A stretch of DNA of 64,000 nucleotides from Eutreptiella sp. 'Long Island Sound 2002' (GCA_964036045.1 OZ038378.1:199640001-199704000); one strand, 5' to 3'. Shown: positions 4,411-51,596, counted from the stretch's first letter. Notes: generated from the letters alone by a model not told the origin. Numbers and translations: made by a program.

Positions 4411-7108
4411 CTAAGGAACACGGTGAAAGCAAGGATTTCTTGCGGACAGAGAAGGCCTTTGTTATCCCTCCCCCCCCCGCCAATCCCTGATGACTTTGGG
4501 TAACCATATTGGAATTGTTCTTGATCCAGTAGGGTCCCAAAACAGTCCCTGTTGCACCTTTCCGGGTCAAATTGGGTCAAAAACTGGTACTAATGGTCCA
4601 GAAACACCATTTTTATCCTCCCAATTTCCGCTGGCCATTTGTGGAACATCATTTTGGTCCGCTGTTTAACCCGAATTGACGCTCAAAAAACCTGCGCACA
4701 AAAAGTCATGTGTTGCATATCGAGCATTGAGGCTGGGAGGCGATGTTCATCAAGAGCTGGTACTCCGTAGCTGTAGCTGCAGATGGGTCCCAGTGCCTTC
4801 ACACGAACTCATTTCAACACGAAATGGAGACTCAAGCAATCCCAAGGCCTTGCATGGGTTTAGTAACCAATTGTCCCTCACAGAAACCAATGACATAAGC
4901 CACTGGTTCCAAGCAGGCCACAGCTTGCCCTAGGCAGCGCCACACACCACAAAATGTGAACCTACAAGTCCCACAATGCCTGCGTTGTTGCAATAACACC
5001 AAACCTACCCCTCTAGGTGGCTGCAAGAGCGACCCCAATGCCATCCAAAACACTTCTACATTTTTGGGCCAACTTTCCGAAAGAAACAGTGCAATTGGAT
5101 TGGTTGAGGCTTTGGGCCAGGCAAATACTACCCCACAACAAAAGCCAGGGGCTGCAAACGCGTCCTTTTGCATGCTACCATGGGTGCAGTGCGAAAATGC
5201 CATGGACCCAGCCCCTGTGGGGGTTAGCATAGAGAATGCAGGACCACAAATAATTTCGTCAGCACACGTTGGCCCAGGAACGACCATTGAACACACGCCA
5301 CCCCTGAGGGCCTTTCCCAGCGGGCATGGAAGACTGAGGGGAAAAAATCAGCTGAACATTGAAAGTTTTTCGGGCTGCCCTGATTTGAAAGGGTGCTGGC
5401 TGTTCGTGAGCATTACTGTTCAAATTCGGGCCCAAACTGAAAGATTTTGAAAATGCGGCAACCCCGGCAGACACCCACAGAGCCCCTCAGAACCCTGCAG
5501 TGGAGCCCTCATTGAAGCTCCACTGGAGCCCAACAGAGCCACAAGGAGCCCTGGCTGATGAAATATGGCACTAGGCATACAGATGTTGTGTTTTGTTTCC
5601 GTGTCTGCAAAGTTTCTTTGCACGTTCGGAAAATGACCTCTGCCCCCTCCCGTTGCTGCTGTTGTGCAACCTGTGCCAACCATCAGGAAGGGCACGTTGG
5701 CCACACATATAGCCCCCCCCCCCCCCCCCCCCGCGCCCCCGCCGTTGCCACCCTCCTTTTTGGCAATTACGGCCCCTGGAGGCCGATGAGAGTTTCTGAT
5801 CTGGACTTCCTGGAGACCCACCACATCCCAAAATCGGCGAGGGGTGTGAATGTCACAAGAAAAAATGGGCCTACAGCTGAATCTGGATTGGCACATGCCC
5901 ATACTCGCACATGACCAGAAAATGGCTTTGATGACTAAGCCATTCCTCTTGGGGACATCCATCATATGCCAACGCAGTGGGTTTTGGCTCGTTTTGCCAA
6001 ATTTTGCAAGTTTCCCTTCAATGTGTCGAAATAAGGACACCCCCCACCATTTTGAGGGTGGGGAACAAAAAAAAACATGTTTTGTAAGGTATTTAGATGG
6101 GTAGGGGTGGGTTTCGGGGCCTAGTAAGGGGTTGGAAGGGCCAAAAATAGGGTACGACATCCTCCTTCGCAGATTCCGAAAAATAGACAACTTAGGGACA
6201 AAATTGGTGACTTGAGCCATTATTCACCCCTTAAAGGGACTGTGAATGATGAAAATGAGCAAGAGGAAGGGGAATGTTTCCAACTTCCATGGTATGGTGA
6301 AAGGATAGGGATGGGCTATTTTTAGGGGTAAAGTGGCTATTTTTAGAAGTCTGGGTTGGATCATATCAACAGTGTCCTACCCCATTTTTTCACAATTTCG
6401 CCATACAGCTCTCCAACTGTCCCAACCTTCTCCAAAACATAACACCCCCAAAATAAAGGGGGGGGGGCGTATGGAGTCTTGTGGGGTACGCGCTGTGACA
6501 GGCAAGCGCTCAAGCTCAGCAAAACAAAGTCCTCATCAATGGAAACCTCCCCCCAAAAAAGGGCACCTGGTAATGGGTGCAGTGCAGGCTATCTAAAACC
6601 TGACCAGAACAGGCCAAAAAAATCCAAACCGCCCACAATAATGGCCCATTTCGAAAAAAAATACGGTTCCGGACGCCCCCCCAACCCAACCCATACATCT
6701 CCGGAAAAGCCTTTTTCGAGGGCATGCCCCTACCTCTGGGATACCCAGTGGGCACAAATGAGGCAACAATGGCACCGACCCCCAAAAGCCCAGCATGTTG
6801 GCATAAAACCTGACGTCCCCAAGGGACTTGCAGGCTGGCATAGGTTGCCTGCAAAATTGGCTTTTTGGAGTGACCCATGACAACCCCTGGGGGGACTTGG
6901 GACAGGTAGGGACAGGTCATCCTTTGGTGCAAACCCATGGTGAGCCCCCTGGCACTAAATAGGGCTCCTTTGGTCGTTGGTGCAGGTTCCAGGTGCCTGC
7001 AACAGCAGATTGATCTACTGTGTGACACACGGGTAGGTCAAGTGGGTGTGGCAACATGGCAGGATCAGTGTGCAAGTAGCTGTAGAAGTCCATGAAGGCG
7101 ACAGAGAC

Positions 7109-7268: not shown

Positions 7269-8710
7269 CTGCACCAATGTCGATTTTGAGGCGCTTGCAG
7301 GGCGCGGGCAAAATATCTCTCGCCCCCACCGCCCCCCAAGTCTTCTATGAAACTACCCAGGTACAAAGCTGGAAGGTGGCGCACTAGGGGTGGTTGGAAG
7401 GCGATAATGGGGGACTGGTGTACCACCCCAACTCTCCTTGCAAAGACGCTTTATCCCCCCTAACACACAGCCAATCTCTGAAACACACTGCCACATATCT
7501 GGCCCCCTAACACCATCAGGATCAGGGTTAACTCTGGTTGGATTCTTGTGTGTGGAAATACAACGCATGTCCACTGGTGCTCATTGCCTGGTGCCTCCTG
7601 TGCATTTGTCAGAGGATGATGCACTGGGACACATGCAGGGGTCCTCAAGCCTGTGCAGAGGCGGGGACAGCGCAGGGTATGAAAGGGGTTCTAGGTTCCA
7701 AAGGAAATCCAAGCTGCTCCATTGTCTCAGGGGCTTGTTTCACAATGAGAATGGGGCATGGATCACCCAGTGGACATGGAGGGGAAGGGCCACCATGCGC
7801 GTTGAAAAGCACAAACCGGGACCACAGCAGGGCACATCTCTTCTTGACCTGCAAGATGTGCAGCCCTGTCAAAATCCGTGCTCTCCAAACACCTACCTGG
7901 CAAGATACCTAAACAGTTCACAAACTTGTGCACGGGTACTATCTGAATTGGGGCTAGTTACCAAGTCTGCCTTCCTTGTTTGGTTCCTTATGTTGCACTT
8001 GGCTGGTTTGAATGTAGGCTCTTCCCGTTTCCCTTCCTGCCGTGCCACTGCCTCTGTCCGACTGCCGCTCTCCCACCCAAACACCCCAATACGCACGAGA
8101 AGCCCGCGTGGTACACAAATCACAATCACAAAATTTGCGTACCAAATGGGACACGGATGAGCACAACGGAGTCGCTGGGCATGTTCTTGGGGGAATGTTT
8201 GCCCGGCGCGCGGAGACAGCAAATCGACTCTAAGGCTTGTTTCTCCTGTCTCAAAGTAGCGAGCTTGTGAGTTTGTGCAACAATGTTCTCGGAGGAATCG
8301 TCATCGTTCTCCGGTTGAGAGGGCACATTTATGGTATCATCCACTAGGTCCACAAATGAGGCCCTAGTGGACCGAGAAGGCGAAGAAATCGGTTGAGAGG
8401 GCGTTGAATGCGTCCCTACTTCAGGCACAAGGGGGGAACGTTAGCGCGCTGGGCATCTTTTTGGACCCGTGCCCCACCAGTGGCCTTTTAGGGGGTGCAC
8501 TACGGGGGCGCACTTAGCGCAGTGCAGCTATTTGGGCGTCTGGCTGCACTAGGGACCCATACTTTGAGATACTAGGAGCATCATGGTGACCCCTAGCGTA
8601 GGTTTTGACGTCTGATTTTGTCCCCTTTGTTGGGGAACCCCGAGAATGCAGGGGTGACGTACCTCTTTTGGGAACCTTCCGGTGTATTGAGGAAACTGGG
8701 ACAATCTTTG

Positions 8711-9168
8711 AATCCACACTTTATTGCGTGGCCCCTCAAGTTGGGGTTAGGGACTCACAATCCACGCTTTGTTGCGTGGCCCCTCGAGTTGGGGTTAGGG
8801 ACTCACAATCCACGCTTTGTTGCGTGGCCCCTCGAGTTGGGGTTACGGACTCACAATCCACGCTTTGTTGCGTGGCCCCTCGAGTTGGGGTTAGGGACTC
8901 ACAATCCACGCTTTGTTGCGTGGCCCCTCGAGTTGGGGTTAGGGACTCACAATCCACGCTTTGTTGTGTGGCCCCTCAAGTTGGGGTTACGGACTCACAA
9001 TCCACGCTTTGTTGCGTGGCCCCTCGAGTTGGGGTTAGGGGCTCACAATCCACGCTTTGTTGTGTGGCCCCTCAAGTTGGGGTTACGGACTCACAATCCA
9101 CACTTTGTTGCGTGGCCCCTCGAGTTGGGGTTAGGGGCTCACAATCCACGCTTTGTTGCGTGGCCCCC
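8711..9168 (+). repeat. 48-bp minisatellite, ~9.5 copies
   Basis: Unit AATCCACGCTTTGTTGCGTGGCCCCTCGAGTTGGGGTTAGGGACTCAC; contains a CCACGC/GCGTGG hairpin and, in most units, TTAGGG. Confidence 0.95.
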
Positions 9169-9376
9169 CTACAGACCATGGGAGCATGTTCCGCCTCATG
9201 TTTGGACTGACCAAAGCAACTCGGCCGCCACGCAAGATGAGGCAGAGGATGAGGTAGAAGTGTGTGTGTTGTGTTGCCAAAGGCACTCCACCGTGGCAGT
9301 TTGTGATGAGTGTAAGGAGCACTATTGCAATGAATGTATTGACACCCACACTTGTGGGACCAATGTTGTTTGTTAA
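9169..9376 (+). other. Cys/His-rich (B-box-like) zinc-finger coding remnant, probably the tail of a mobile-element ORF
   Basis: CVLCCQRHSTVAVCDECKEHYCNECIDTHTC after an acidic stretch, at the end of ORF 8618-9376. Confidence 0.45.
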
Positions 9377-10619
9377 GTACAATACAAATGACAGTTGGAG
9401 TTGCTGAATTCACAGATATTGCTTTATTATGCGAAGTGCTTTGTAGGGAAGGTGTGTAGTGCAATGTGGTCTACTTGGGGGGCTTCTCCATGAGAGGGTA
9501 AATTTGGGGCTGAAGTCGGGATAGTTAATAGAAAAGTAGCCGCAGTCGCAGCGGCCGAAAAGGCCCGTGATATCGCGGAACTCCCACAGGGGTTATTCGT
9601 ACTTGCTTCGCATGATGTGGTACATCCTCCTCAGCTGGTGCAATGTGCTCACTTGCCTTGGCAACACACCAGGGCAATCCTAGCCCCTTTATGAATGGGG
9701 TAGTCTCAGGTTTAACTCAGCATCCAACCACTCCTCCGTAGCAAGTGGCTGCAACTCAGGTTGGAGGTGGGCAAGGGCTGCCATGATGGCTATTGCCCAT
9801 GCTCCCCCGCACTAGCGGAGGCCCACAGAAGCGGCTTTTTGTTCACTGTTCACACGGATCATCATGCCGAGTAGGGGTGTGGCACCCGTAGGGGCAGCCC
9901 GAGGGAAATACTCCACCGCCACCTTCGGGTATTGCAGCCAGTCTTTGTGCTGCCCCCCCCTTTCAGTGCACCTCGAAGAAAGCCTTGCTAGTAGGGCCCT
10001 TGGTAATGGGTAGAACCTTCCCACAAGGGCACTGCCACTTCTTAGCGGCTATGTTCCGTTCCCGCCACCCAGCATCAGCATAGTAGGAGACACGGGGGGG
10101 GGGGGGGGTAGCCATAGGGGTTGTGGAGAATGCAAAACTCATAGTGAGGTGACTTGAAAACTGACAAACACAGAGAATTAGGAAATTGTTTCATGGTGCC
10201 CAAAACACCAACAAGCAAGTTGTGTCAAGCACATATGACCCGACCAAACAGACCATCCACACCAAACCACCAACACCCGGAGCTACTTGGGGGTGGGTTG
10301 TTGGTAACCCATTGCGTAACGATGACCCCCATGCCCAACCCCCCATGCCCAACCCTAATAGAGGTAGGACAACTGGGCCACCCGCAGTGGGGCTAGGTGC
10401 AAGCAAACAGTCCACACACCTTTTCAACTTTTTCAACCAAGACTCTTGTCTTTTTTGGACCACAACACTTGCCCCCCCCCCCCCCCCCCCCGCCTACCAG
10501 GTGAAATTTTGCTTGTTGCGGGAGAATTTTTCGCAACCCCCCCCCCCCCCCGGTGGGACCTTAGACAACCACCTACACCTCTTGTGAGGTGCACCCGGCC
10601 GCTACCTAGGGGGAGGGTG

Positions 10620-10950
10620 GGGGGGGGGGGGATGACACCTGATTGTGTTGTTGTCTGCACCTGGCGTTGCATCTTGGCCTCTCGCCACTTCCCCACTTCC
10701 CACCGCCCTTCCCTTGAACCCTTTCCCTCCCGAGGTAGCAGTGCCTGTCGACCTCTCACCACCTTGTGTCCTCCCTCGACCTACCTAGTCTATCCTGACC
10801 TCCCTATGTACCCTTCCTTGCCCTTGGCAGATTGTACCAATGAAGCCCTTGTACTTTCCTTGTTTCAATGCTCTGTGTCGGGTTCACACAAAGAGGGCAA
10901 CTACCCTTGCCATAGGCTAGGTGCGTCCCGGTGGACACCCCATACAGGCA
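10620..10950 (-). repeat. Diverged short copy of the retroelement 3'-terminal repeat
   Basis: Colinear similarity to 11450-11830 and 51597-51850 (GATGACACCTG...TGTCTGCA, CTCTCACCACC, TTGTACCAATGAAGCCC, TGTTTCA). Confidence 0.7.
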
Positions 10951-11445
10951 GTGGGGGATCCCATGCAACATTGGTCTTTGAAATACATTGACCTAGACAA
11001 TCATGCTCTTCTGAATGGTACTTTTGAAAATCACCGGAACCAGTTGTCCCGTGTACCCCACCCCCCTTGTCCTAATAGGGGTAGGGTTCTAGTTCAAGGG
11101 AGGGGGGGGGGGGGGGCAGGTGGCAGAAGCAGAGTGTTGCCGTGTTTGGACAAGCCCATGTTGCCGCACGGCAAGTACCACAGAACACATATTGCAGCCA
11201 ACGCTACCCCTGTACAACTACAAAAAGGTGTCCGACAGGCCACCATACACCCTAGAACACATGAGCACACGGAATTACAGTTACACCCACGCTGCGCACC
11301 CATATTGACCCTTCCTGCATGCTGCACAAAGCTACCAACCACATTTTCTATTGGATTGGAGCCTCAAAATCGATGTTTCCAAAAAAATGCGAAAACACGG
11401 GGTCACTGTGTTTGGAAAAGCCCATGTTAGGACAGGGGGGGGGGG

Positions 11446-14400
11446 TTTTGGCATGACGCCATGGTGTGATGATCTCGTCTGCAGCTGGCGGCGCCTACTG
11501 GCCGATCGCCATTTGCTGCCCTTCCCTTGGACCCTTTCCCTCCATAGGCGGTGGTGCCCATCAGCTTCTCACCACCCTTTGACCTTCCTCTTCCTCCTTG
11601 CCCTAACCTTCCCTCTCCCCTCCCCTTTCCCTTCCCTTGGCCTTTCCCTCTGTAGGCCACGGTGCCCATCGGCCTCACCACACTCCTTCCCTTCCCTTTC
11701 CCTTGGTCGGTTGTGCCAACGGAGCCCCCGGACTTGCCCTGTTTCACTTCTCTGCGTCGAGTCCACGCAGAGGAAGGCAAATGCCTTCGCCGTTGGCCAG
11801 GTGCGTCCAAGCGGCCATCCCAAGCCGGCGGTGAGGTACCTCTCCCCAACGGCGGCTGGTGGGCCCTGGGATGGCCACTTGCAGGGTCGTTTCCCCGACG
11901 GGGGCACATAACAACCTTTCTCCTCCAAGTTCCCGCGCTCAGTCCATCCTTTGGCGAGCGCAACACAAACCCCCTACCCTCTCCTTCATGCCTTTGCTGC
12001 GCGGACGGGGGTTGTGGGGGATGCGTGGGTGCACGGGGGAGTAGGATGTAGCGGGTGACGTGGGGTGGGCCTCTTACCGTCGCTGGCCGCCCACTTCGTT
12101 GCGCGACTCCCCGGACCACCTCAACATAGGAGCGAGTTGTTGTTGGGTTGACGGTGGTGTCCCGTGTTGGATGGAGGTGCGTAGGGCCCCTTGCTGGCCC
12201 CCTTCTCCCGGCTTGGTCCGGGCGCTTGACGACGTGGTGCGTCCCTTTTCTGGTTGAGTTGCTACGCGAGGGAAGGAGTCTCTCCCCTGCTCGCTTCTCA
12301 GTGCCAGCACGCTGGGACTTACTGCCGTGGTCACTCCCTTGAGAGCGCGGCCCCCGGTGGGCTTGCGTTGCCACATCGGGCATCTCGCTGAGGCCCCATT
12401 GGACCCCCCGAGAAGAACTCGGTGCACGTGTAGACTTCATTGTTTTGTTTTGGTCGGTGTTGGTCACCACCCTGGCTAAAAAAGTGCGGGGGTTGCCTTC
12501 CCCCTGCCTGTTGTTTGGCCTTGCCCCCTACTCCGCCGGCGAGAAAGCTCGCTGCGCGTTGTGGTAGCCGGGGCGCATCCAATGGAGACTGCGGCGCCGT
12601 CTCCATTGGGCATGGGTCCAGAGGCCCGTCCACGGCCGTACCTCAGACCACATCGTTGTGCCTTGTTGCTGTATCACTGGGGGCCGCGGCTCCCCAGTGT
12701 GAGTCTCGGTGGCTGGAGGATCTTCTCCTCCCCAGCAGAGCCATGTTGATGGTGTGAGACTCTCCTTTCCATCAGGCTTTTTGCTTTCATTGTTCTTCCT
12801 TCTCCTCCCGGCGCCGGGTTGCCCGTCCCTTGGGTTCCTGGGTCGCTTGGCGCCCGGTCTCAGTCCCTCTTGCTTCAAGGCCTAGGCCATGCCATGGTGC
12901 GTTCCGGGTCGCGCCTTTGTGCTCGGCACTGCGCTGAACAAGTTGCACCCCGTCACCTTGACGCCGTCGGAACTGTGCGACCGTGCGCTTCCACGCCCTC
13001 TTGTCACCCGCGGGTGGGGCTTGTCCGCTTCTCACTTCGGTTCCATCTTCTACTCCTTGTACAGCCGGATGCCTACTTGCTCGGCAATCACGTTTGCCCT
13101 GTGCAAGTTTTGCATCAACCTGGTTGTGTCCTCCACTGTGAAGTTGATGCCCTCCCCGATGATGAACACCTCCGGCTCCCAACGTCTCACCTCCGGCACC
13201 CATACCGTTGAGGCTAGCACTCGCACTTTGTACACCTGGTCTGGTGCCAATAAGTACATGTTGCTTCCTGCCTCGGGGTAGTCGGAGAACCACCCTCTCC
13301 TCCTTTTCTCCGCGAGGATCCGGTCCGCTTGGATGGCGCGGACGTGGTGCGTGTGCCACCGGAACTTCTCATGGAACAAGAGGCGGCGGGTCCGTTGCGT
13401 TCCCGACCCCGGTGGCGGTGCGCCCTTGGGTGTACCCTCACCGTGGCTAGCCCCCATTCCACTCGCATGTTCGGAACGACCGGGCCTTTTGCTTCCCCAC
13501 AAGAAAGACCAAAAACCCTCTCCATCGCCCTCCGTTTCTGGGTTTTTGGCACTTGGTGGCGCTTCCTCCGGGGCTGTTTGCCCCGCCGAACTTGAGCTGT
13601 TGCAGAAATTGGATCGAAAGTATGTGGGGTTGAACTGGTAGTTGGGTGGTTCCTCCGCCGGCCTTGGCGGTGTCACCCCGGGCGCACTTTTCCATCCCTC
13701 GTAGCCGGAGGTCAACCTTTTGAACAGGTGGGTGGCTTTGGCAATGTTGTTCATGTTCTTGTCCGGATGTAACCGCAACACCCACTTTTTGTATGCGGCC
13801 TTCACTTCATCCATGGTGGGTGCACTACCCACTCCAATCTGTTCAAGAAAGCTCCATCCTTCAAAACCCGGGGGCAGCACCTCAACGGGCTCAACTACCT
13901 CCGGGACCACCTTCTTCTTGTCCACTTTTACTCGGCGCATCCCTCCCACTAACAACACTTGCACTTTGTCCTTGTAGATCTCCTCCAACACCCCCTTGTG
14001 GCCCTCCAACTCCGGTTGTCTCATCCCTACTAGCCTCACCCCATTCCATAGTTCAAATGTTTCTTCCTGCCCTCCCATCTCTCCTTCTTCACTCCTTTCC
14101 TCCTTTCTTCCGTGCGGTTCATTGTCTCCCGCCACCCCGCGTCCTTTTGTTTCTTCCCCGTGCTGTTGTTGTTGGGCAGCTTTTGAGTCCTCGGCGCCTC
14201 CCATGTGCTCCACCTCTTGCACCCTGACCCTATCCAATGACACCAAAACCCTTCTGCCACAGTCCATTCGGAGTCTTACTTTTCCTTGTTCCTCGATGAT
14301 GCTTTCAACCTCACCTGTCTTCCCCTCCAGTTCCATCTTTTTCTTCATGCCTGTTAGTGCTACTCTTCCCCCGAGAACAATGCGATGGCCATCCACTCCA

Positions 14401-17400
14401 ACCACTTCCGGTCTCTCGGAGTCACTTTGCTGTGGTTCGGCCCGTGCTTGTGGCTTGGGGGGTTGTTCCTCCAGCGCCACCCCTGCCTTCCTCGCTTTGC
14501 TGCGTTGTTCTCTCCTCCTCTGCTTGTGCCTCTCTCTTTCCTCCCGCAACCATTTGGCTGGCCTTGCCTTTCTGCACCTACACTGGAACACCCTGTTGCT
14601 GCGGAACACCTTCTTCGCCTGGGAGACAGTGACCCCAGCACACTTCAAGTGCATCCAGTGCCCCTGGCTGCACCTCACTGCTCCCTCCTTGGCCCTCAAC
14701 GGTCTGCAGCATAGCCCACATGCGTGCTTGGGACCACGCTTTTGCGTCCAAGCTTCGGGTCCAACCGTGCTCGCTGTCCCGTTGCTGCTCGTGCTGCTAT
14801 CACTCTCCTCATTGTTGTCGGGCTTGGTGTTCTCCTTTTCCTTAGGTGTGCTTCCTGCTCCCAACCATTTGGTCCACCACCTGTTGTTTCCCATGTCCAT
14901 ACAACCACCATCCTCGGCCTCCACGAGGACCACCGGCACTTCCTCCTGCTCCCTCCAAACCGGGTGAGGGTCATCATCATCCCAAACTCCAGCAAGATGT
15001 TCGTGATACCGGTGATCCACTCCCGGTTTCTTTCGGCGGATTGCGGCACATCTGTTTGCCACCTCCATGCCCAAGACGGACATTGTGTAGGCCTTTAGAC
15101 CCCCCTTCAGTGGGGCACACGCCACTTCATCCGCTGGAGAGGTCCAACTTTGCACCACTCCAACTGCTGGGCCTCCTTCCGGTATAATTGACCATAGCGT
15201 TTGGCCAATTGTGTTGAGGGTGCACACGTCCAAGGCTGATAGCACCGGCACATGTCCTGGATGCGTGTGTATCCAACCAACCAATTTTCCTCCCAAGGAT
15301 GCGCCCCAACTGACCGCCTCTGTGAGCGCCTCATCTCCCACTGCACAGTGGTGGCTTGTTTGTACGTCGTGTCTTGGTATGTGTAGACCCCCTACTTTGA
15401 CCCCATTTTCGGTCCTTGTCCCCCACAACAATCCCATGGTCTCTTTCCCTTGGCTTGCCGCTTCCCGGACTGCTTGGTTCCATGTCTCCAATATGTCCTT
15501 GGGGAGCTCCACTTGCCATTCACCCTTTCTTGGTTGTGGCTTTGTTCGTCTTGATTTCGCCTCCTCCGAGGTCACCTTCTCTTCTGTCGGCCCCCTCTCT
15601 TCGGCTTCCTTCAACCCGTGGTTTCCCACTCCTGTTGGGTGTTGTACCTTGCTGCGGTCCTTGTTCTTTGTCGCTTTTGGACGTGGTTGTTCGTCCAACA
15701 CCCCCTTCTCCACCCCATCCACTGCCACTTCTCGAGATGGTTCTGGCTCTCCCTGGCCGGGGGCATTTCTTCTCTCCTCCTGCCTTGGTTGTTTCTTTGT
15801 CTCTTCTTCTTCCACCACGTCTAGCTCTGGGTTCTCCTGGCTTTGGCCTCCCGCTTCCTCTTTCCTCAGCCCTTGCAACCATCTCAAGATTGATATGTCA
15901 CTGTTGGTGTCACTATCTTCTCCATGTCCTCCGCTTTCTTCACCTTGCTGCTCATCCTCTTGCCGCTGTGGTGGATATTGTTCCTTGTGGCTTTGGATTT
16001 CGCTCTTCTCCTTTTGCTTGTGGTCTTCTTCCTTCTCCTCCTTCTCCCCCACCTCTAGCCCCACTTGTGGTGATGGACGAGGCCCTCCATGGTCTTCGGT
16101 GTGGCTCTTCCTCTGTTGCCTTTGTTGCTCCACGGTCGCCTCATCGTCCACCACCTCCGGCCGCAAGTCCTTGTGTCCCTCCATTTGCCCTCCTTCGCCC
16201 CTTATCTTCAAGCCTTGCAGCCATGTCAAGATTGATACGTCACTGTCGGTGTCACCGTCTTCCACTTCTTTTGTTCCTTTGTCGTCTTGGCTCTCCCTCT
16301 CCTGCCGCTTCGCTTGTTCTTCCTTTTGTTGTCTCTCAACATCATTTGTCAGGCTTTTGTTGGTGCTTGCAGCCTCCGTGGTCTCGGCGCACCCAACTTT
16401 GCGGTTGTCGCTTTGCGTTGGCGCCACCAACGGTGGTTCCCTCAAGTCCACAACCACCACCGTCTCCCGCCACACACCACAGTTCTTCATCTCCTCTTCC
16501 TCTCCGACGATCTCAGTTGTTCTCACCCCTTGTGGGTGCGGATTTTTGGCTTCCCTCCTTTGGGGTTCCAGCCCGCCTTCCGGCGGTGTCCACACTTTCG
16601 GTGGCGGTGGTACGTGCTCAAACGGGCAGCTCTTTCTCCGACACCTCCACCCGTACCAACATCTCTTCTTTCTCCTCTCTTCTTTTGAGATCTCCTTCCT
16701 TACCCACCGTTGCATCCGTCCAAACCACACGTGCATCTCCCCCATGGTGATGTCTTGTCCACCCCACCACACTCGCAAGAACTTGCCCCATTGTTTCTTT
16801 TGCTCGTGTGTCCCATAGCCTCGCTGTGTGGCCGTTTTGGTGATGGTTTGGATCGCCTCCTTGAATAATCGCAAAACTGAGCACAACCTCAATGCTCTGA
16901 TGTATTGCCCTGTCAATACTCCCAACCTTTGGGCGTCCAAGATCATGCTATCCCTCACTGGATATCGCCTTATTTTTATGGGATAGTCCTTCTCTCTCCA
17001 ATGCACTCCGGTTTCAAACTTGGTGCGCCCTTTCTCATCCTCTCTCCACCACAAGTCAGCCCCCAAGAAGACAAGGTGGCCTCCATCAGCGGCTCTTCGG
17101 ACCGTCCTTTTGAGTTTGTATGCTTCCTCCCCAGGGACGACGCCGGTCAAGGAAAACATGTCATCCACAAAGCGATAGTTGTGTTCCACTTGCTCCGGCC
17201 TCCTTCCTTCTTCTTCCGCGAACCTCTTCTCCGTCCCATAACACGCCAAGTTCGCCAAGAAGACGGCACATTTCAGTCCCATTCCGAAACCTTTCTTTTG
17301 CTTGTACACCACACCCCCTTGCTTGACATATCCGTTGTTTAGTACCCACTGCACCATCTCCTTCACTTCTCTCTTGCTCCAGCTGTCAGCTTGGGGTTCC

Positions 17401-18360
17401 TCCCCCTTTCGTCCAAGCCACCAACCGTCTTTTCCGACCCGTAGCTCTTCCTCCTCTTCCCCATCCTTGTCCTCCTTTGCAGTTTGTTATTCCCAGTCCC
17501 AAGCCTCCTCGATTGCCTCCAACACGTTTGTGGAGACGTAGTCTTGATCCATGCTTGGGTACATCGCCACGAAATCTCCCACTTCCGCCGAAGCTTTACA
17601 TTGCGCTATCAATTCCTCCTCAAATCGGACCGGCTGCGTGAACTCCTCCACACTATCTATCCACCACACCCTCTTCGGGTTCCCTTTCTTCCTCCATTCC
17701 ACATCCTTGCGTTTCAAGCTTCTGCATACTTGCGTTAATGCTTGCACCAAGACCTCTCCGACTCCTGCTATGCTTGCTTCCGGCTTGTCTTTCTCTTCTT
17801 CGGTTTGTTTCCTTGCTCCACTAATCCATCGTATGTTTTCTTTCTGGGCCTTCCATATTCCATATATGTACGGCAACCTTCTGTTGACTGCGAGGAGCCT
17901 CTCCGCGTGGTAGTCTTCGTGGCGTTGTAGGATGGCCTCCTCACTTTCCGGCGCGACCTCAAACCCATCACTTTGGAGGTATATGTCCCTCCGGTGCTTG
18001 TATAGTCGCTTACATCCGCCAACCCAGTTGTGCGGACCCCTATCCTCCTTCAAGAATGCAAAATCTTTCTTCATGTCCTTCACTTTTTGCATCCCTTCCG
18101 TCCCTTGTGGCAACGTGTGAACCTCCTTGTCCACTTGCCACATCACTTTTTTCTTGATCAAGTCTTTCCACCCTTCGTAGTCCTCTCTTTGCCCTGCTCC
18201 ACTTCGTACTTTGCACTCGATGTACTCCGTTAACCCCTCTTCCAAGTTGTGGAGCACCTTCCATTCTGGCTCTTGCTGCTTGAATTTGTATCCTTTTTTG
18301 TCCACGTCTTCCATTATTGGACTATTGAAGCCCGCCATCTCTGTCACGACTGTCATGACA
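11446..18360 (-). mobile_element. Penelope-like retroelement (Naiad/Chlamys-type RT), apparently 5'-truncated, in intron 6 of the selenoprotein gene
   Basis: RT motifs KGYKFK, DFAFLKEDRGPHNWVGGCKRLY, LPYIYGIWK, GDFVAMYPSM, YKQKKGFGMG, YRFVDD and GVLTGQYIRA; bounded by G11 (11435-11445) and G15 (18361-18375). Confidence 0.85.
13050..18356 (-). pseudogene. PLE polyprotein: RT + CCCH + JAMM/MPN + PHD + 2x KOW/SH3-like + DnaJ + unknown domain; one in-frame TAA at 17487-17489
   Basis: ORFs 17487-18443 and 13050-17366 are in the same frame and separated only by a TAA plus 40 open codons; domain motifs read directly from the translation. Confidence 0.85.
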
Positions 18361-19574
18361 GGGGGGGGGGGGGGGAGCAAGTCCTCTCTAATACTAGGCA
18401 GATGGCCACCAGGACTAGCAGACGAATGGTGAACCCTTTCCAATAATCCAATGAGCGGGATAAGGTGGCACTCCTCTTTCCATGGGTTTGCACATAAACC
18501 ACGTCACGTTACCTTCTCGACCGCAAAAGCTGTGGTCGGAAGAACAATAATATGCGGTCAACTTGTGGAGAAAAGGCCGGGCTTGCGCTGACACGCTCAG
18601 GGGAGGGGAGGGGTAAAGAGCCCCAGATACAATATGAGCCCTCCCAAGGCCCCACCACACGATTGTGGAATGATGATGGTGACTGTTCAGCTCGCAGCCC
18701 CTCAGATGACCGGTTGAGACCACCGGCTGTGATTGCCATCCCATGCTGTCATCCATCCCCAGATGTCTACCCGACACATCAGATGAGCTCCCACCCCAGC
18801 CAATGACAACCACTACCATTCTACCCCACGTGGCCCACATTTCATGATCTTTTTTTCAAAAGCATCCATACTTTCCGATACCTTTCCGTTTTTCACAGAT
18901 ATGCCACAGATGGTGTTGCATTCTTTGACACAACAGCTTTGTTTTTCTGGAAGCAGGAGCCTACACACTCACCCAAATAGGGGATGCAGAAACCCATGGG
19001 CCCCACATCGCTGCCACTCCCTGAATAACCTCACGCACAACATTTTGATTCCCACGGGCATGAGGATGCCAAAGATGCAGAGGATGCACGTGCACCATTT
19101 GCACTGTGTCAAGGAGAAGGATGCTGAGGGTATTGTAAGACATGGCACAACAGACCAGCTGGGCATCGAGGCATAGGCAGGACGGCCCTGAAGGATTAAT
19201 ACAAGTTGATTTCTGCCCTGCCCAACAAATGCACAAACCCAAAAAACAAGAGGCACTACACACGGCAAATTTTCAAATCATCCAGTGATACATCCATTTT
19301 GTCACCAGCAACGACAAGACATATGAACCTCCGACCGCAGTAGGCAGTTTATGGACCAAAAATTGGCCATTAGCCACCGGCAGGTTGTGGTCAACCACCG
19401 GCGGGCAGTGATTCACCGCTGGCCCAGAGCGCGGTCATGAAGGGGCGGTCCTTCGTGGAAAAAAAAAACCTAATTTGTTTCTAAAAGGACCACCCTCGGG
19501 GCATAGGGTCAGAATGAAACGCGTGAATCCTGGGTTGCCCCGGCCTGCCCTGCACCTTGCCGACTCAGGCACAC

Positions 19575-25315: not shown

Positions 25316-25919
25316 GATATGATTTGCACGTCTGAGGGTAAAGACCACAACACAGCAACATGCAAAGATGGTAAATAAATTGCTTTGCTTCATTGCAAAT
25401 GTGCAGACACAACCACCCTGCTGCCTCATGACTTATTGTATTGTCATGGTTTTTCATGATCCTGTACATACTACCCCCCCCTCGAGGTTTTGGGCTCTTG
25501 ATGAATGCCAAGCCCCTTTCCCCCGCCTTTGTCCTCCCCTCCCTCACCAGGGAAGAGGGTCCACGCCAAGTGACGCCCCCAGCCCGCCCTCCAGGGAGCC
25601 GCACTACCACTGTACACGCACATTGTGTGGCACAGAAATTGCAGCAGAAAACGAAATAACAAAGCACAAGAAACATTGGTGTGCAGAGATTATCAAGGTG
25701 AAAACACAATGACAGGTGAAAGCTGGTGTGCCAACCATAAGAAAGGCATGCGTGCGTTCAATGAGCTGCCAACGTCATGAAACTTACTCCTTGAGCGGCT
25801 CGAGATAAAATTCTATTGCCTATCGGCAAGGCGCCTCCAAGAGGGAGGGAGTGCAGTCAGTCAATCACCCACCCCCGTCCAAACACCCAAATAGGGGGAA
25901 AAAACCAAAGAAAGAGGGT

Positions 25920-26510
25920 CTAAAGCATGCTTTACGTGGGATATTTGATCATTGTGAATGGTCAGCATATCAAAAAAATCGGTTTTGAAAAATTTCCAAT
26001 TTTGAGCTGAAGAGGGTGGTAAATTGGTCATGCAGTTTGTGCGCACATCAGGTGTCACTGAACCACATACAAACAGCAATGTTGGGGCTTTTGGGGGATG
26101 TGTGTCTGTCACGGGGGGTGTCTCCCAAGGGATTGGTACACAACCCCTGCTTATGCAGTTTTTCGCCCTGAGCAGCTCAAAAATCTGAACCCTGAAAATC
26201 TGAAAAGTTTCTGAAACCTGTTTTTTTAAATCATGACCACTCACAATGAGCATGCAAGCTATGTAAAGCATGCTTTGGGCAGTATTGATGTGTTTTTTTA
26301 CCCTATTTGGGTATTGGGTGGGGGGGGGGGGTTCCCAAGGGATTGGTACACCACCTGCTCATGCAACTTTTTGGCATGGGGGCAGCTCAAAAATCGAAGT
26401 TTCCGAAACTAGTTTTTTTGATATCATGACCACTTACAATGACCATCCACGTTATGTAAAGCATGTTTCAGGCAGTACTTATGTGTGTTTTACCCTATTT
26501 GGATGTGCAT
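25920..26510 (+). repeat. ~190-bp unit repeat family (TTTTTCACCCTATTTGGG...CCCAAGGGATTGGTACAC...GCTCAAAAATCGAAGTTTCCGAAAC)
   Basis: Occurs as short tandem runs here and at 35830-36270 and 46160-46460; partial copy at 28286-28380. Confidence 0.85.
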
Positions 26511-26771
26511 TGCTCAGGGTAGATTCCCTGTGAGGTGGACTTGCCAAAGGGAATTGAATTTTTCAAAACGTGACCTTCCCGAAACCCTTCTGTCACCCCT
26601 AGGATAGGGTTGGGTGATGATTTGGTGACAATATGGGTACTTGGGCACCCATGGGGACCCACGTGGTGGCCGCTGGGCCCATGTAGCCCCAGCCATGGGT
26701 CACACCCAATACCCATAAAAAAACATAAATGCTACCGAAAATAGCTTTACATCAAAAAAACAATGTTCGGA

Positions 26772-28190: not shown

Positions 28191-31100
28191 ATACATGAGC
28201 AGATTGTCTACCACTCCCTTGGAAAACAATGCCCGCCCGCCCCCCCCCCACACAATGCCCGTAAAAAACACATGAATACTGCCTAAAACATGCTTTACAT
28301 AGCTTGGATGGTCATTTTCATTGTTCGTTTTCAGTGATCACAATATAAGGAAAAAATTGGAAACTTCCATTTTTGAGCTCGCCATGGTGAAAAATTGCAA
28401 GCTGTGTACCAGCCCATGCACACATGTAGGCGATTATTGGTGAAAACGGTGATTTCGCGTCTTTCACGTGGCCCCTTGACTGGCCATAGGCAGGGCTAGA
28501 GACTGCAAAAAACGTCCTTTTGTATCCTAGTAGGCATATGTTGTCACAACATCCCCACTTGCACTTGCACCCCTTCTAGTGGGTACTATGGGGTCACCAA
28601 GGTCGCCAAAAACGCCGACATAGGGGGAATCCTTGCACTGCGCGCGCACTGCGCGCTACTTTTAGACTATGTTCCCCCCGAAGAGCCCCCAGGCACGCCC
28701 CTTGGAAACAACCTTAGAATTAGGCGACCCAATCTGGACTGGAGGGGACCTTGAGGGGGACCTTCCCGGTTCTTGTAGCAGTGGTGTACGACCAGGGGCC
28801 TTTGGGGGGGAACTTGACTGTGTGTTGGGCGGTGGAGATGGAGGGCAGTGAGGTGGCGAATCTGAACTTGGGATGGCAAAGGAGATGGACTCCATTTGGC
28901 ATTGCCGATTCACCACTCTCACCCCATCTTGGTAGTATTCCAAGTGGAGGAGTCCGTCTTCCGTGGCGGTTGCAGGCCATTGGAGCGGGTATAGAACACC
29001 CTATCCCCAATATTGAGATGCATGGAGAAAGTGGGCTTGAGAAATGAGGAGGGAAGTATGATGTCCTGTAGCAGGCACCCTGAAAATGTATCACCATATC
29101 AATCAACCGAGAAAAAGAGTAGGTGTGGTGGAAATGAGTAAAAAATATGTGCAAAAAGGTAGAAATGGGTGAAACACGGGAACATCCAAAAATGCCATAT
29201 CCCCAATGCATCAAAACCTACTACCAAACAACAATGATGCCCAAAGTACCACAAAGGATGGGTTTCTACTACAGCCAGACGCCCAAATAGTTGCACTGCG
29301 CGCGCACTGCGCTTAAGGGGCCCCGATAGCAAAAACCACATGAAAACCGTAAACCACACAAACCCTCTGGAGTCGGAACACGAAAAAACTTTTCAGCTCA
29401 AAATCGGCAAAAAACCAAAATAGTCATGATTTTCGACCGAAACAAGGGGGAGATAAGTTTTTCCATATTTTTGACCCCCACCCACCCCTCCCCTCCCCCC
29501 CAAAAAAAAGAAAAAAGGGTGGGTTTCAAGTGGGGGTGGTGTGTGTGTGGGGGGGGGGGAGGGTCTGAACCAAAAACTCATAGGGGGATGTGTTTATTGA
29601 ACAAAATAATGATTTTACAAGGGGGCTAAACAAACAATTCAACCCCTTGGGGTAGGGTACGCGAATAGACCCAAAAGAGGGGGGGTATGTTGCGTTTTCC
29701 CCAAAATGCGGGTCTGCTTGGCTTTGATCTAACAACCTTTGCAAGGTGATTTTCAGGTGCCACTAGACAGCCCATCTAGCATGAAAACGGCGAAATCCTC
29801 ACCAGCAAGCGCCCATAGGGGGGGCCGACCGGGGGTACCCAAAGTTTGGACCTGGGACCCCCACCATGGGGTAGGGGTCCATATACTAGAAAAAAATTGT
29901 TTGGGTCCCAAGTCCAAATCCACACGCAGCCACGGGGGGGCGACTACAACCGGTCCTGATGCGACATACCCCCCAGCTATCTGTCAAAACTCGGGGGGGG
30001 GGGGGCGTAGTTGGGGGGGGGGGGTCCAGCCGGGGGTCGGGGGGGTCCAGCCGGGGGTCGGGGGGGGGGTCCAGCCGGGGGTCATATGGGTAGTATGGGT
30101 TGCTATATATCACTATGAATATCTCTTTACAATTGTCCCAACCCAACCCATCCATCTCTACTTATCACCACGTCTTTGCTCTCCACAGAAAACCCCTCTT
30201 TTGTACCCCTCGTTATCCAAGTGTCTTTCCTTCAAGCGCTTTTTTTTCGCGGTCAAACACAGTGTTCACAAGTCCATTAGTATAGGATAGTATACACATG
30301 GCGAACCTGCGCCAGCAGCGTGCACCGTAAGGTGTCTTTCCTTCAAGTGCTATCTGTGGGCACACGCACTCCGGCGAACACAGCCGTGTTGAGCAGCACA
30401 CTGCTCAGCCTAAGGAACGATTATTCATGGCCTTATCAGGATTGCCTTGAATACAGCGTGTGCACAATGCCAGCCAACACAGAACAAATACTTCTGGTTT
30501 GCGCAACTTTTTGACTTTCGGGACAGAATAGCAATAGCTTCTCAAACTACTGCTCAACTGGTGGTGACCAACATGGTGTAGGTGCATGGCCCTAGGTTGT
30601 GGCTATGGTGGCAGTGGTAGTGGGTAGTACCTCATCTTGGACGAAGGGAGGGAGGTCAGGCACAAGGCCAAATACGCCCGAATGACTCACTAAGAGGAGA
30701 GACAAGAACGTGCCAAAGAATTTGGGCCGAGAGATCGAGAGCAATGGAGAGGTCAAAAAATCATTATTGTGCACTCCACTCAGAACACTCGGGGCTCTCA
30801 CCCATTCCATACGGGACTGCAAATTGTAATGTCGACTAGTAGTTGGAGAAATGCCTGCTTTTGTGCGTGTTCATGGCGAAGTGACCGACCGAAGGGTACT
30901 GACAACCCAAAAAAGTTCAGCGGGATATTGCGTATGACTGCAGCAACCCAGAAGACCCATTGAAAGTGCAATCTCCGGCAACTTCCTCAACTCCAGTGGG
31001 AAAAAAGCCCAAACTGGCCTCTCTACCCAATCTACAAGGCACACATGAGACTGCACCTGTACAAACTGGAGTTCAAGCCTAAGATTCTCGAGCAACTCTA

Positions 31101-31528
31101 CCAGCCGCTCTCACAAACAAACATTAGACCAAAGACCTGAGGAGTTGACCCACCGCTGTCTCTACCATGTGAGCATTCGACCCCCATCACCTGACAACCC
31201 GTACTCAGAATTGACAAAAACAACCACCCTACTACGACCCCACTGCGACCCAACAGCCCGCACTTTAGCACTAGATGACCGCAGCTGTTGAACAAACTAT
31301 TACCTCCTTACCTGCTCAGTAAATTCTCATACCCCCTGGAACCCTGCCACAAGACTTCGCATATCCCGTGGGTGGAGGGGGGGGGGGGGGTTTCCATTGC
31401 CACTGACCAAAACATCTGTCGCTGCACATACACGCAGGAGGACATCAACACCATCCCAATTCTGCCACTTCTCCCGACTCTTGTCATCGCAAAATTCTCA
31501 ATTCCGTACAGTAGTGACCCCCAATAAA

Positions 31529-34500
31529 TTAGGCGTCCAGATTAATGGTCAGAATATGCAACAATTGGGTCTCCTTCAGTGCTGCAAGTGCTTGGGCCCC
31601 ACGATCTCCTCCTGAATTGTACTGAAGATCAAGGGTCAGAGTATGCAACAATAGGGTCTCCTTCAGTGCTGCAGGTGCTGGGGCCCCACTGGCTCCTCCT
31701 GAATTGTGCCGAAGATCAAGGGTCAGAGTATGCAGCAAGGGGGCCTCCTTCAGTGCTGCAAGTGCTTGGGTCCCACTGGCTCCACCTGAATTGTACTGAA
31801 GATCAAGGGTCAGAGTATGCAACAAGGTCGTTAGCAGGTCACAAAGCGCTCCACACATGCACGTCCTGGTGTGCATATGCAGCAATGTTTGGCAGTTCCA
31901 TGTCGTTGGCCAAAGCCACACGCAAGTGCTATGCTGCAACCGGATACAAGCCATTGATATGCTACATGCTTCGTCCTGTGATTTCCTTCTGGGGGCTGGA
32001 CCGTGTTTTGTCTACCGCAATGCGATAGAGTATGCAACAAGGGGGCCTCCTTCAGTGCTGCAAGTGCTTGGGCCCCACTAGCTCCTACTGAATTGTACCG
32101 AAGATTGAGGGTCAGAGTATGCAACAACGGGGGCCTCCTTCAGTGCTGCAAGTGCTTGGGCCCCACTAGCTCCTGCTGAATTGTACCGAAGATTCAGGGT
32201 CAGAGTATGCAACAAGGGGGCCTCCTTCAGCGCTGCAAGTGCTTGGGCCCCACTGTCTCCTACTGGATTGACCGAAAGATCAAGGGACAAGGTCTGCGAG
32301 CGATGGGGCCTCCTTCAGCGTTGCAAGTGCTTGGGCCCCACTGTCTCCCACTAAATTGTACTGAAGATCAAGGGTCAGAGCATGCAACAAGGGGGTCTCC
32401 TCCAGTGCTGCAAGTGCTTGGGCCCCACTGTCTCCTACTGAATTGTGCCGAAGATTCAGGGTCAGAGTATGCAACAAGGGGGCCTCCTTCAGTGCTGCAA
32501 GTGCTTGGGCCCCACTGTCTCCTATTGAATTGGCCCCAAGATTCAGGGTCAGAGTGTGCAACAAGGGGGCCTCCTTCAGTTCTGCAAGTGCTTGGGCCCC
32601 ACTGTCTCCTACTGAATTGTCCAAAAGAGTAAGGGTCAGAGTATGCAACAAGGGGGCCTCCTTCAGTGCTGCAAGTGCTTGGGCCCCACTGTCTCCTATT
32701 GAATTGACCGAAACATCAAGGGACAAGGTATGCAGCGATGGGGCCTCCTTCAGTTCTGCAAGTGCTTGGGCCCCACTGTCTCCTACTGAATTGTCCAAAA
32801 GAGTAAGGGTCAGAGTATGCAACAACGGGGGCCTCCTTCAGTGCTGCAAGTGCTTGGGCCCCACTGTCTCCTACTGAACTGTCCGAAAGATTCAGGGTCA
32901 GAGTATGCAACAAGGGGGCCTCCTTCAGTGCTGCAAGTGCTTGGGCCCCACTGTCTCCTACTGAACTGTCCGAAAGATTCAGGGTCAGAGTATGCAACAA
33001 GGGGGCCTCCTTCAGTTCTGCAAGTGCTTGGGCCCCACTGTCTCCTACTGAATTGTGCCGAAGATTCAGGGTCAGAGTATGCAACAAGGGGGCCTCCTTC
33101 AGCGCTGCAAGTGCTTGTGCCCCACTGGCTCCTACTGAATTGTGCCGAAGATCAAGGGTCAGAGTATGCAGCAAGGGGGCCTCCTTCAGCGTTGCAAGTG
33201 CTTGGGCCCCACTGTCTCCCACTAAATTGTACTGAAGATCAAGGGCCAGAGTATGCAACAAAGGGGGCCTCCTTCAGTGCTGCAAGTGCTTGGGCCCCAC
33301 TGTCTCCTACTGAATTGTGCCGAAGAGTAAGGGTCAGAGTATGCAACAAGGGGGCCTCCTTCAGTGCTGCAAGTGCTTGGGCCCCACTGTCTCCTATTGA
33401 ATTGGCCCCAAGATTCAGGGTCAGAGTATGCAACAAGGGGGCCTCCTTCAGTGCTGCAAGTGCTTGGGCCCCACTGTCTCCTACTGAATTGTCCAAAAGA
33501 GTAAGGGTCAGAGTGTGCAACAAGGGGGCCTCCTTCAGTGCTGCAAGTGCTTGGGCCCCACTGTCTCCTATTGAATTGGCCGAAACATCAAGGGTCAAGG
33601 TATGCAGCGATGGGGCCTCCTTCAGTTCTGCAAGTGCTTGGGCCCCACTGTCTCCTACTGAATTGGCCGAAACATCAAGGGTCAGAGTATGCAACAAGGG
33701 GGCCTCCTTCAGTGCTGCAAGTGCTTGGGCCCCACTGTCTCCTACTGAACTGTCCGAAAGATTCATGGTCAGAGTATGCAACAAGGGGGTCTCCTTCAGC
33801 GCTGCAAGTGCTTGTGCCCCACTGGCTCCTACTGAATTGTGCCCAAGATCAAGGGTCAGAGTATGCAGCGATGGGGCCTCCTTCAGCGCTGCAAGTGCTT
33901 GTGCCCCACTGTCGCCTACTGAATAGGAGAAAAGATTCAGGGTCAGAGTATGCAACAACGGGGTCTCCTTCAGCGCTGCAAGTGCTTGTGCCCCACTGGC
34001 TCCTACTGAATTGACCGAAACATCAAGGGTCAGGGCATGCAGCAAGGGGGCCTCCTTCAGTGCTGCAAGTGCTTGGGCCCCACTGTCTCCTACTGAAATG
34101 CCCGAAAGATTCAGGGTCAGAGTATGCAACAAGGGGGCCTTCTTCAGTGCTGCAAGTGCCTGGGCCCCACTAGCTCCTACTGAATTGGCCGAAAGATTCA
34201 GGGTCAGGGTATGCAGAAAGGGGGCCTCCTTCAGTTCTGCAAGTGCTTGGGCCCCACTAGCTCCTACTGAAGTGTCCCAAAGATCAAGGGTCAGAGTATG
34301 CAACAAGGGGGCCTCCTTCAGTGTTGCAAGTGCTTGGGCCCCACTGTCTCCTACTGAATTGGCCCCAAGATTCAGGGTCAGAGTATGCAACAACGGGGCC
34401 TCCTTCAGTGTTGCAAGTGCTTGGGCCCCACTGTCTCCTACTGAATTGGCCGAAACATCAAGGGTCAGAGTATGCAACAAGGGGGCCTCCTTCAGTGCTG

Positions 34501-51503: not shown

Positions 51504-51596
51504 TCCCTTGGGGCGGTCCTTAACCAAAAAAAACAAAAAAAATCTAGTTCCTAAAAGATCCCCCTGATCCTCGCACCTAGCCATGCAGTGGACAGT

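Follow-up and report, generated by a model that had tools for sequence, protein, structure and literature searches.

Deubiquitinases of the cysteine type, among them OTU, Josephin-like and Ulp1-like enzymes, are known from mobile genetic elements and from viruses, and the reason for their presence in transposons is unclear. Here we describe a retroelement that carries a deubiquitinase-like domain of a different chemistry. The copy under study lies in a 64,000-nucleotide stretch of DNA from Eutreptiella sp. 'Long Island Sound 2002' (GCA_964036045.1 OZ038378.1:199640001-199704000). This whole stretch is referred to below as the window, and positions are counted from its first nucleotide. The polyprotein gene of the element encodes a predicted zinc metalloprotease domain of the JAMM (MPN+) type that most resembles the AMSH family of cellular deubiquitinases. 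The window copy was compared with an intact copy, locus L001 of the ENA assembly ERZ25074135, which has an uninterrupted 2504-codon gene (P0015).

Protease cargo has been described in several types of mobile element. OTU-like cargo is present in Helentrons (PMC6431247), and Josephin-like cargo is present in the Dualen elements, which are retrotransposons without long terminal repeats (LTRs) (cited in PMC8557442). The role of such proteases is unproven but they are thought to interfere with protein degradation (PMC6431247, PMC8557442). Penelope-like elements (PLEs) of the Naiad/Chlamys clade have an N-terminal endonuclease and are diagnosed by the order of a Lys/Arg (KR)-rich stretch, a CxC motif and a GxKF motif (Craig et al. 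2021, PMC8557442). Members of this clade have pseudo-LTRs, lack canonical hammerheads and use (C)n or (CA)n targets (PMC8557442), and in one of them, Chlamys-1_cBra, a Josephin-like protease motif lies in a long extension of the C-terminus (PMC8557442). Among the cellular enzymes, AMSH-LP's Ins-2 segment is held by a non-catalytic zinc (PMC9313428). A full-text literature search returned no description of a JAMM deubiquitinase in a retroelement, although its coverage was limited and such an absence is not proof.

The predicted JAMM domain and its family

The predicted JAMM domain is complete, is AMSH-like in sequence and predicted fold, and was kept in all copies sampled. The motif E...HxH-x7-S-x2-D is complete on the minus strand of the window copy (Table 1). 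When the 181-residue domain was searched in isolation, it exceeded the cut-offs of both Pfam JAB (PF01398; 28.2 bits, cut-off 22.5) and Pfam Prok-JAB (31.6 bits, cut-off 25). AlphaFold2 predicted an MPN fold for the domain, with a mean predicted local distance difference test (pLDDT) of 85.1 and a predicted template modelling score (pTM) of 0.82. Foldseek comparison of this model with the PDB gave 253 matches at E ≤0.001, and the best 50 of the 253 were all MPN-domain proteins. The motif, the Pfam scores, the PDB matches and the structural model together indicate that the domain is more than a chance resemblance. Across the element copies the catalytic motif was conserved; the catalytic Glu was kept in 8 of 8 sampled young copies and the HxH-x7-S-x2-D stretch in every one of the 8-9 young copies sampled for it. 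Because the catalytic motif is complete, a reading of the domain as an MPN-minus scaffold was rejected.

The AMSH family ranked first by sequence, by profile and by predicted fold. A phmmer search of all PDB sequences with the JAMM domain was led by Sst2, AMSH-LP and STAMBP (E 1e-5 to 5e-4), with BilC (E 0.025) and likewise CSN5 and Rpn11 far below them. A profile (A4) built exclusively from element-family sequences matched STAMBP (7e-7), Sst2 (5e-6) and AMSH-LP (3e-5) in the PDB ahead of BRCC36 (3e-4), Rpn11 (0.014) and CSN5 (0.04). By Foldseek, ranks 1-23 in the PDB were all members of the AMSH family (E 2e-11 to 1e-9, template modelling (TM) score 0.65-0.70, ~180 columns), and Rpn11 came next with an E of 1.5e-7 over 144 columns. 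Among viral models the best match was to a phage JAB protein (3.5e-7), while RadC-like proteins reached 4e-4; these fold alignments were shorter, with TM ≤0.54.

A search by HMMER of 1.84 billion representative proteins with the JAMM domain returned only 31 proteins at E ≤0.001. The best of these were fragments of related element copies from the same assembly as the intact copy, followed by eukaryotic AMSH-type proteins, which are the nearest proteins outside the element family. The closest of these cellular AMSH-like proteins share 30-38% identity with the JAMM domain of the element. The cellular matches include P0040, with both a USP8_dimer and a JAB domain; P0046, to which its source gives the name STAM-binding protein; and P0050, also AMSH-type, from EukProt. 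A word-index protein search with the JAMM part returned solely the element's own cluster. Pfam searches of the window gene and of the intact copy's 2504-residue protein detected neither a MIT nor a USP8-dimer domain. The element domain is therefore classified, from its predicted domain content, as AMSH-like and is not an AMSH orthologue.

The residues of the Ins-2 zinc site were assigned to columns by alignment with AMSH-type proteins and by HMMER alignment to AMSH-LP chain 2znr. The Cys of A-N-R-C-A-A falls on the Cys402 column of AMSH-LP, the final H-x-H of H-R-Y-H-E-H on the His408 and His410 columns, the Tyr preceding that H-x-H on the Phe407 column, and the Cys of L-D-V-C-T on the His362 column. 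The ligands of the structural zinc in AMSH-LP are reportedly His, Cys, His and His (Sato et al. 2008), and the numbering of 2znr agrees with this. The element has Cys, Cys, His and His at these columns, and all four residues are zinc-capable. The residues of the segment were kept in 8 of 8 sampled young copies. A predicted second zinc site is plausibly kept, then, as Cys-Cys-His-His.

These results bear on an initial annotation of the window, which had proposed a catalytically intact AMSH-like JAMM domain. Its placement of the catalytic Glu in GKETMGLLWG was borne out, as this residue (codon 15441-15443) aligns with the catalytic-Glu column of Sst2 and AMSH-LP, and its HxH-x7-S-x2-D coordinates (15269-15228) match the minus strand exactly. 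Its assignment to the AMSH type agrees with the rankings by sequence, profile and fold. A best match to phage JAB or RadC-like proteins, the outcome that would have spoken against that assignment, was not what we found; by fold both were far weaker than the AMSH family (3.5e-7 and 4e-4 versus 2e-11), by sequence BilC lay far behind it (0.025 versus 1e-5), and the phage-JAB/RadC reading was rejected. The annotation had also likened a C...HxxH tail to the Ins-2 zinc site of AMSH. The likeness itself was retained, with Cys and His on the ligand columns, but the aligned pattern is the Cys plus the last H-x-H and not C...HxxH.

Codon comparisons showed the predicted JAMM domain to be under purifying selection. 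The window copy and the intact copy differ by 25 synonymous and 22 non-synonymous changes over 1766 codons, with a ratio of non-synonymous to synonymous rates (dN/dS) of 0.24; the JAMM part contributes 5 synonymous differences and 1 non-synonymous difference. Across six copies, 8 codons of the JAMM domain varied only synonymously and 2 with an amino-acid change, in a sequence with 128 synonymous and 412 non-synonymous sites. By a binomial estimate that ignores transition bias, so few amino-acid changes would arise by chance about 3 times in 10,000. For the whole protein, pairwise dN/dS between the two subfamilies was 0.22-0.33. All catalytic and zinc-column residues were kept in the 8-9 young copies sampled, whereas fragments of the old family had decayed at these columns, as dead copies would be expected to do.

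The carrier element, its copies and its relatives

The features of the window copy are collected in Table 1. By BLASTN, the copy matched L001:8215-15183 in one block of 6969 columns at 98.1% identity. Of the 1767 codons compared between the two genes, 1744 were identical; there was no frameshift relative to the intact copy, and one internal stop was present in the window gene and none in that of L001. This single in-frame stop lies upstream of the JAMM domain, and the frame is open from the JAMM domain to the natural stop. The copy starts just past the CxC motif and keeps GxKF, the endonuclease-side N-terminus and CxC having been lost to 5' truncation. Because of the truncation and the in-frame stop the window copy is not autonomous. 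It is a dead copy, yet it shows the intact JAMM sequence of its family.

Table 1. Features of the retroelement copy in the window, with the basis of each assignment.
Feature	Positions	Strand	Basis
5'-truncated retroelement copy, ~6.9 kb of the 8.7-kb unit (5' edge ~18350-18360, 3' end ~11437-11441)	11437-18360	minus	BLASTN
(C)15 run abutting the truncated 5' end (partner (C)11 run at the 3' end, 11435-11445)	18361-18375	minus	ends read
Polyprotein gene remnant	13050-18350	minus	codon comparison with L001
Reverse-transcriptase region: GxKF-like, DKG-like, motifs 1/2, A, B (17247-17291), C (17154-17177), thumb	16700-18350	minus	relatives' alignment
CCCH-type zinc-finger-like motif directly after the reverse transcriptase	16614-16661	minus	read from sequence
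Two acidic repeats of ~110 residues each, between reverse transcriptase and JAMM	15674-16262	minus	self-match
JAMM/MPN+ metalloprotease domain, AMSH-like, 181 residues	14970-15512	minus	Pfam, PDB sequence/profile ranking, AlphaFold2, Foldseek
G-K-E-T-M-G, catalytic Glu codon 15441-15443	15432-15449	minus	aligned with catalytic-Glu column of Sst2 and AMSH-LP
Zinc-binding/catalytic HxH-x7-S-x2-D, H-T-H-P-G-H-V-P-V-L-S-A-L-D	15228-15269	minus	read from sequence
L-D-V-C-T, Cys on the core His ligand column	15219-15233	minus	alignment with AMSH-type proteins and AMSH-LP chain 2znr
Ins-2-like segment (Cys...His tail)	14997-15050	minus	alignment with AMSH-type proteins
Cys/His-rich PHD-like finger, C-terminal to JAMM	14574-14720	minus	read from sequence
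Two short repeats, ~50-58 residues	13908-14393	minus	read from sequence
DnaJ J domain, HPD intact at 13758-13772	13692-13856	minus	Pfam, PDB
C-terminal region up to the natural stop	13053-13691	minus	conserved in L003
Element 3' region; final ~700 bp (~11437-12134) a pseudo-LTR terminal direct repeat	11437-13049	minus	match to L001

The element is present in many copies. A protein cluster at ≥90% identity has at least 169 members on many contigs, and every member whose source was checked comes from ERZ25074135. The cluster proteins begin at many different points and most share one C-terminus. At the DNA level, all copies and fragments end in A4C5, including fragments of ~40 to 700 bp, among them some of 200-350 bp, that share this 3' end, and tandem partial copies are present. 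In L001, a 696-bp repeat (5776-6471 and 14486-15181) is 99.86% identical between its two occurrences, and its upstream occurrence (L001:5776-6469) matches window positions 12134-11441 at 99.3% identity. As a 696-bp partial copy directly precedes the full unit in L001 and the P0015 gene starts inside it, the repeat is interpreted as a pseudo-LTR. In the L001 tandem (corresponding to the window region 11437-12470), the 3' end of one element is at the same time where the coding sequence of the following unit begins, at its 5' end.

Runs of C flank the window copy, and the two together probably represent a (C)n target or its duplication. A C run is found also where the L001 copy has its 5' edge. 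A target duplication consisting of (C)n plus TGTC was considered and rejected, the TGTC on the 5' side being more likely element sequence or microhomology. A relaxed Rfam scan of window positions 10500-19500 detected no hammerhead ribozyme; no other Rfam family was matched, and no tRNAs were found. Ten other open reading frames (ORFs) of the window had no Pfam match.

Reverse-transcriptase (RT) motifs were assigned by eye on an alignment with six relatives (P0016-P0020 and P0052) from ENA and JGI metagenome contigs, which a word-index protein search returned and which share 40-47% identity with the element over the linker and RT. In the alignment, a KR-rich stretch is followed by a conserved CxC, then by GxKF-like and DKG-like motifs and finally by RT motifs 1/2, A, B and C, with motifs A and B separated by ~95 residues. 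The KR-rich/CxC/GxKF order is seen in the intact copy and in P0016, P0018 and P0020, where the sequence reaches those columns. PDB sequence searches with the whole protein or with an RT-family profile returned no RT, the profile matching only OTU domains. Penelope-like RTs and telomerase RTs are kin, and in a structure model of P0018, which is poor (pLDDT 53), the ten best Foldseek matches were telomerase RTs without exception, the first of them at E 2.8e-3 with a probability of 0.96. P0015 was seen by eye to have, around residue 440, a Y...Y-x-G...R pattern spaced as in GIY-YIG; it lacks Pfam support. We call the element Penelope-like. Judging from its motifs, it probably belongs to or near Naiad/Chlamys. 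The initial annotation had placed the JAMM domain inside a retroelement, and this agrees with the multicopy, 5'-truncated copies with a common 3' end, the RT motifs and the telomerase-RT-like fold matches.

The full domain order of the element runs from an endonuclease-side N-terminus through the CxC linker, RT, CCCH finger, acidic repeats, JAMM domain, PHD-like finger, two small repeats and J domain to the C-terminal domain. Pfam searches of the whole gene and of longer copies gave no RVT_1, GIY-YIG, ubiquitin-like, MIT or PHD match. The CCCH-like finger has no Pfam match, and its columns hold a Cys/His motif in most of the RT relatives. The two acidic repeats (15674-15920 and 16011-16262) are 66% identical by self-match. 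They share the motif D-x-D-[VI]-S-I-L-x-W-L-Q-G-L, which resembles short protein-interaction motifs and has copies at 16206-16247 and 15861-15905. The PHD-like finger of the element likewise has no Pfam match. The short repeats downstream of it look by eye like small beta-barrel (KOW/SH3-like) units, with no Pfam match and no significant PDB sequence match; a Gly-Gly follows the first of them, and the spacer that separates the repeats contains another. The J domain is well supported (Pfam DnaJ 30.7-31.9 bits, cut-off 27.8; PDB J domains at E 1.6e-5). The C-terminal region has no significant PDB or Pfam match and shares 41% identity with an older sister family, L003.

Five of the six RT relatives (P0016, P0017, P0019, P0020 and P0052) have an OTU cysteine protease after the RT and zinc-finger-like motif. 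Pfam OTU scored 35.4 bits in P0052 and 23.7 bits in P0017 (cut-off 23.3), and the catalytic Cys and His motifs of OTU are visible in the relatives' alignment. The OTU domain is followed by a Pfam PHD finger in P0016 and P0017 and by a DnaJ domain in P0052, where DnaJ scored 34.4 bits. The occurrence of two unrelated deubiquitinase folds, as predicted, in one slot of one retroelement lineage is a non-homologous swap. The initial annotation had remarked that the protease cargo of retroelements is usually cysteine-type, and this holds within the lineage, where the relatives carry OTU.

A degraded copy of an older sister family (L003:8253-12727; ERZ25074135 ctg10559) has RT, JAMM, DnaJ and C-terminal domain in the same order and shares 32-52% amino-acid identity with the element. 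A lone JAMM fragment (L002) is 46% identical. A scan of JGI metagenomes gave two distant degraded fragments (L005 and L006, 27% identity), which were uninformative.

Several other features of the window were recorded. Between 12001 and 18000, strand asymmetry marks the element (AT skew -0.30 to -0.41, GC skew down to -0.31), and its coding strand is very purine-rich. Older fragments at 10619-10962 and 51646-51987 are 66-81% identical to the pseudo-LTR region and are probably remnants of related families. Tandem arrays were found at 31476-35700 (87-bp unit, at least 40 copies, 60-98% alike) and at 8615-9263 (48-bp unit, ~10 or more copies, up to 97% alike); the former yields long spurious ORFs on both strands, for example one of 822 codons at 33239-35707 on the minus strand. 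A dispersed repeat at 26188-26527, 35837-36300 and 46282-46428 is arranged in tandem at ~190 bp spacing and ends in long G runs, with inverted copies near 25868-25994 and 28261-28326. A microsatellite-like tract of the GGTTGG type and a tandem repeat of 198 bp, in which GTGTGCACCGCC-like units abound, occur at 51288-51517 and 62429-62940.

Proposed function and alternative explanations

We favour, with some reservation, the view that the JAMM domain is a working AMSH-type zinc isopeptidase, that is, a putative deubiquitinase, within the giant polyprotein of a recently active Penelope-like retrotransposon. After translation, the domain would remove ubiquitin chains, perhaps of the K63 type, from the element's own protein or ribonucleoprotein or from nearby host factors. 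The K63 proposal derives from the retained Ins-2 zinc columns and the aromatic residue at the Phe407 column. Deubiquitination would spare these substrates ubiquitin-directed sorting, autophagy or degradation, and the HPD-bearing J domain would bring in host Hsp70 for the folding or remodelling of this very large protein.

As relatives have OTU in the JAMM slot, it is the activity itself, rather than the particular domain, that appears to be selected. This suggests that the elements need ubiquitin stripping to spread. We consider the chances about even that the element represents a previously undescribed giant PLE lineage in which a deubiquitinase and an Hsp70-recruiting J domain form a module for host protein control, with OTU and JAMM exchanged. 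If the exchange is real, ubiquitin removal itself would be what the element needs.

A number of observations weigh against this interpretation. On the isolated domain, Prok-JAB slightly outscores JAB (31.6 versus 28.2 bits). Ins-2 exceeds its counterpart in AMSH-type proteins by 9 residues and two insertions specific to the element lie in the core, so that a K63 preference may be lost. The input alignment of the structural model contained AMSH-like proteins, which favours AMSH in Foldseek; the sequence ranking with the element-only profile lacks this bias. For the carrier, the element itself has no Pfam RVT_1 match, and RVT_1 appeared below threshold in two relatives only, at motifs B-C. The telomerase-RT fold matches come from a poor model (pLDDT 53) and lend weak support, and residues 1-700 of the intact copy gave no Pfam GIY-YIG match at E ≤1. 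For selection, the numbers of changes are low and were obtained from six copies that are related. Finally, we infer evasion of ubiquitin-dependent control from domain content.

Among viral proteases, some of the OTU and papain-like types cleave polyproteins as well as removing ubiquitin, and the JAMM domain could similarly be a cis-acting protease that cuts the 2504-residue polyprotein into working parts. Such a role would suit a protein that is very long and has many domains. JAMM enzymes of the archaeal Rpn11 type can cut linear peptide bonds after a ubiquitin-like fold (PMC6043591), and two Gly-Gly dipeptides lie downstream of the JAMM domain, near the small repeats. However, Pfam and PDB sequence searches revealed no ubiquitin-like domain anywhere in the protein, chance may account for the Gly-Gly dipeptides, and enzymes of the AMSH type are isopeptidases for ubiquitin chains. 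We regard cis-processing as unlikely.

It is likewise doubtful that an active domain targets another ubiquitin-like modifier (for example, one that is NEDD8-like) or chains other than K63. CSN5, BRCC36 and Rpn11 were also matched, at lower scores, and the element-specific insertions in the core and in Ins-2 could alter the substrate surface. Nevertheless, the AMSH family led clearly, in sequence as in fold, across the full 180 columns with Ins-2 included, and the zinc-ligand columns were kept, as was an aromatic residue at the Phe407 column.

We give little credence to the possibility that the domain is a passenger, meaning a recently captured piece of a host AMSH-like gene that is useless to the element or is a mere ubiquitin-binding scaffold. 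Transposable elements do capture host fragments, and outside the element family it is cellular AMSH-like proteins that come closest, with 30-38% identity. Against a recent and useless capture, the RT-JAMM-DnaJ order was already present in the older, diverged sister family, every catalytic residue was kept, and the six copies differ at 8 synonymous-only versus 2 amino-acid-changing codons. In the relatives, moreover, this position is taken by another deubiquitinase, which speaks for selection of the activity itself.

That the carrier is a host multigene family or segmental duplication and not a retroelement is very improbable: although Pfam RVT_1 was not matched by the element and the PDB gave no RT by sequence, the cluster has at least 169 members at ≥90% identity on many contigs, the 5' truncations vary while one 3' end with A4C5 is common to the copies, partial copies lie in tandem, published Penelope-like elements show the same order of RT motifs and the CxC linker, and the ten best fold matches are telomerase RT.

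Significance and comparison with known systems

If the reading as a new giant PLE lineage with exchanged deubiquitinases is true, no JAMM deubiquitinase would have been known before from a retroelement of eukaryotes. The element also extends the known cargo of Penelope-like elements. The family described here is a defined one in which the question of why transposons carry deubiquitinases can be addressed by comparison. It would also add to the JAMM variants a compact, divergent AMSH-like enzyme with a Cys in place of the core His and a longer Ins-2.

Compared with the cellular enzymes AMSH and AMSH-LP (STAMBP, STAMBPL1) and Sst2, which are its best matches by sequence, profile and fold, the element domain has the same complete JAMM motif; its Ins-2 ligand columns are occupied by zinc-capable residues and its Phe407 column by an aromatic one. 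Identity to these proteins is, however, only ~20-24%; the core ligand of the element is Cys instead of His, Ins-2 has 9 additional residues and the core has two insertions. The element also lacks a MIT/USP8-dimer or other part that binds the endosomal sorting complexes required for transport (ESCRT), and its domain belongs to a retrotransposon polyprotein whereas theirs are cellular endosomal enzymes. The prokaryotic and phage proteins JAB, BilC and RadC share the MPN fold, and the Prok-JAB model matches the element domain, but they have no Ins-2 zinc segment and gave much weaker matches.

As a retroelement, the carrier shares with the Naiad/Chlamys PLEs a DKG-like motif, a long spacer between motifs A and B, a pseudo-LTR, the absence of a hammerhead and insertion at (C)n. 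It differs in the size of its gene (2504 codons versus a maximum of ~1800 in PMC8557442), in its cargo of a JAMM metalloprotease and a J domain, and in that its GIY-YIG is a motif seen by eye, outside Pfam support. Its OTU-bearing relatives likewise have an RT, a zinc-finger-like motif, a deubiquitinase and then a PHD finger and/or J domain. The two acidic repeats, however, are absent from them, and their OTU domain is unrelated to JAMM in both fold and chemistry. The OTU-like cargo of Helentrons and the Josephin-like cargo of Dualen elements are, like that of the present element, deubiquitinase-type domains in mobile elements, but theirs are cysteine proteases and the domain described here is a predicted zinc metalloprotease.

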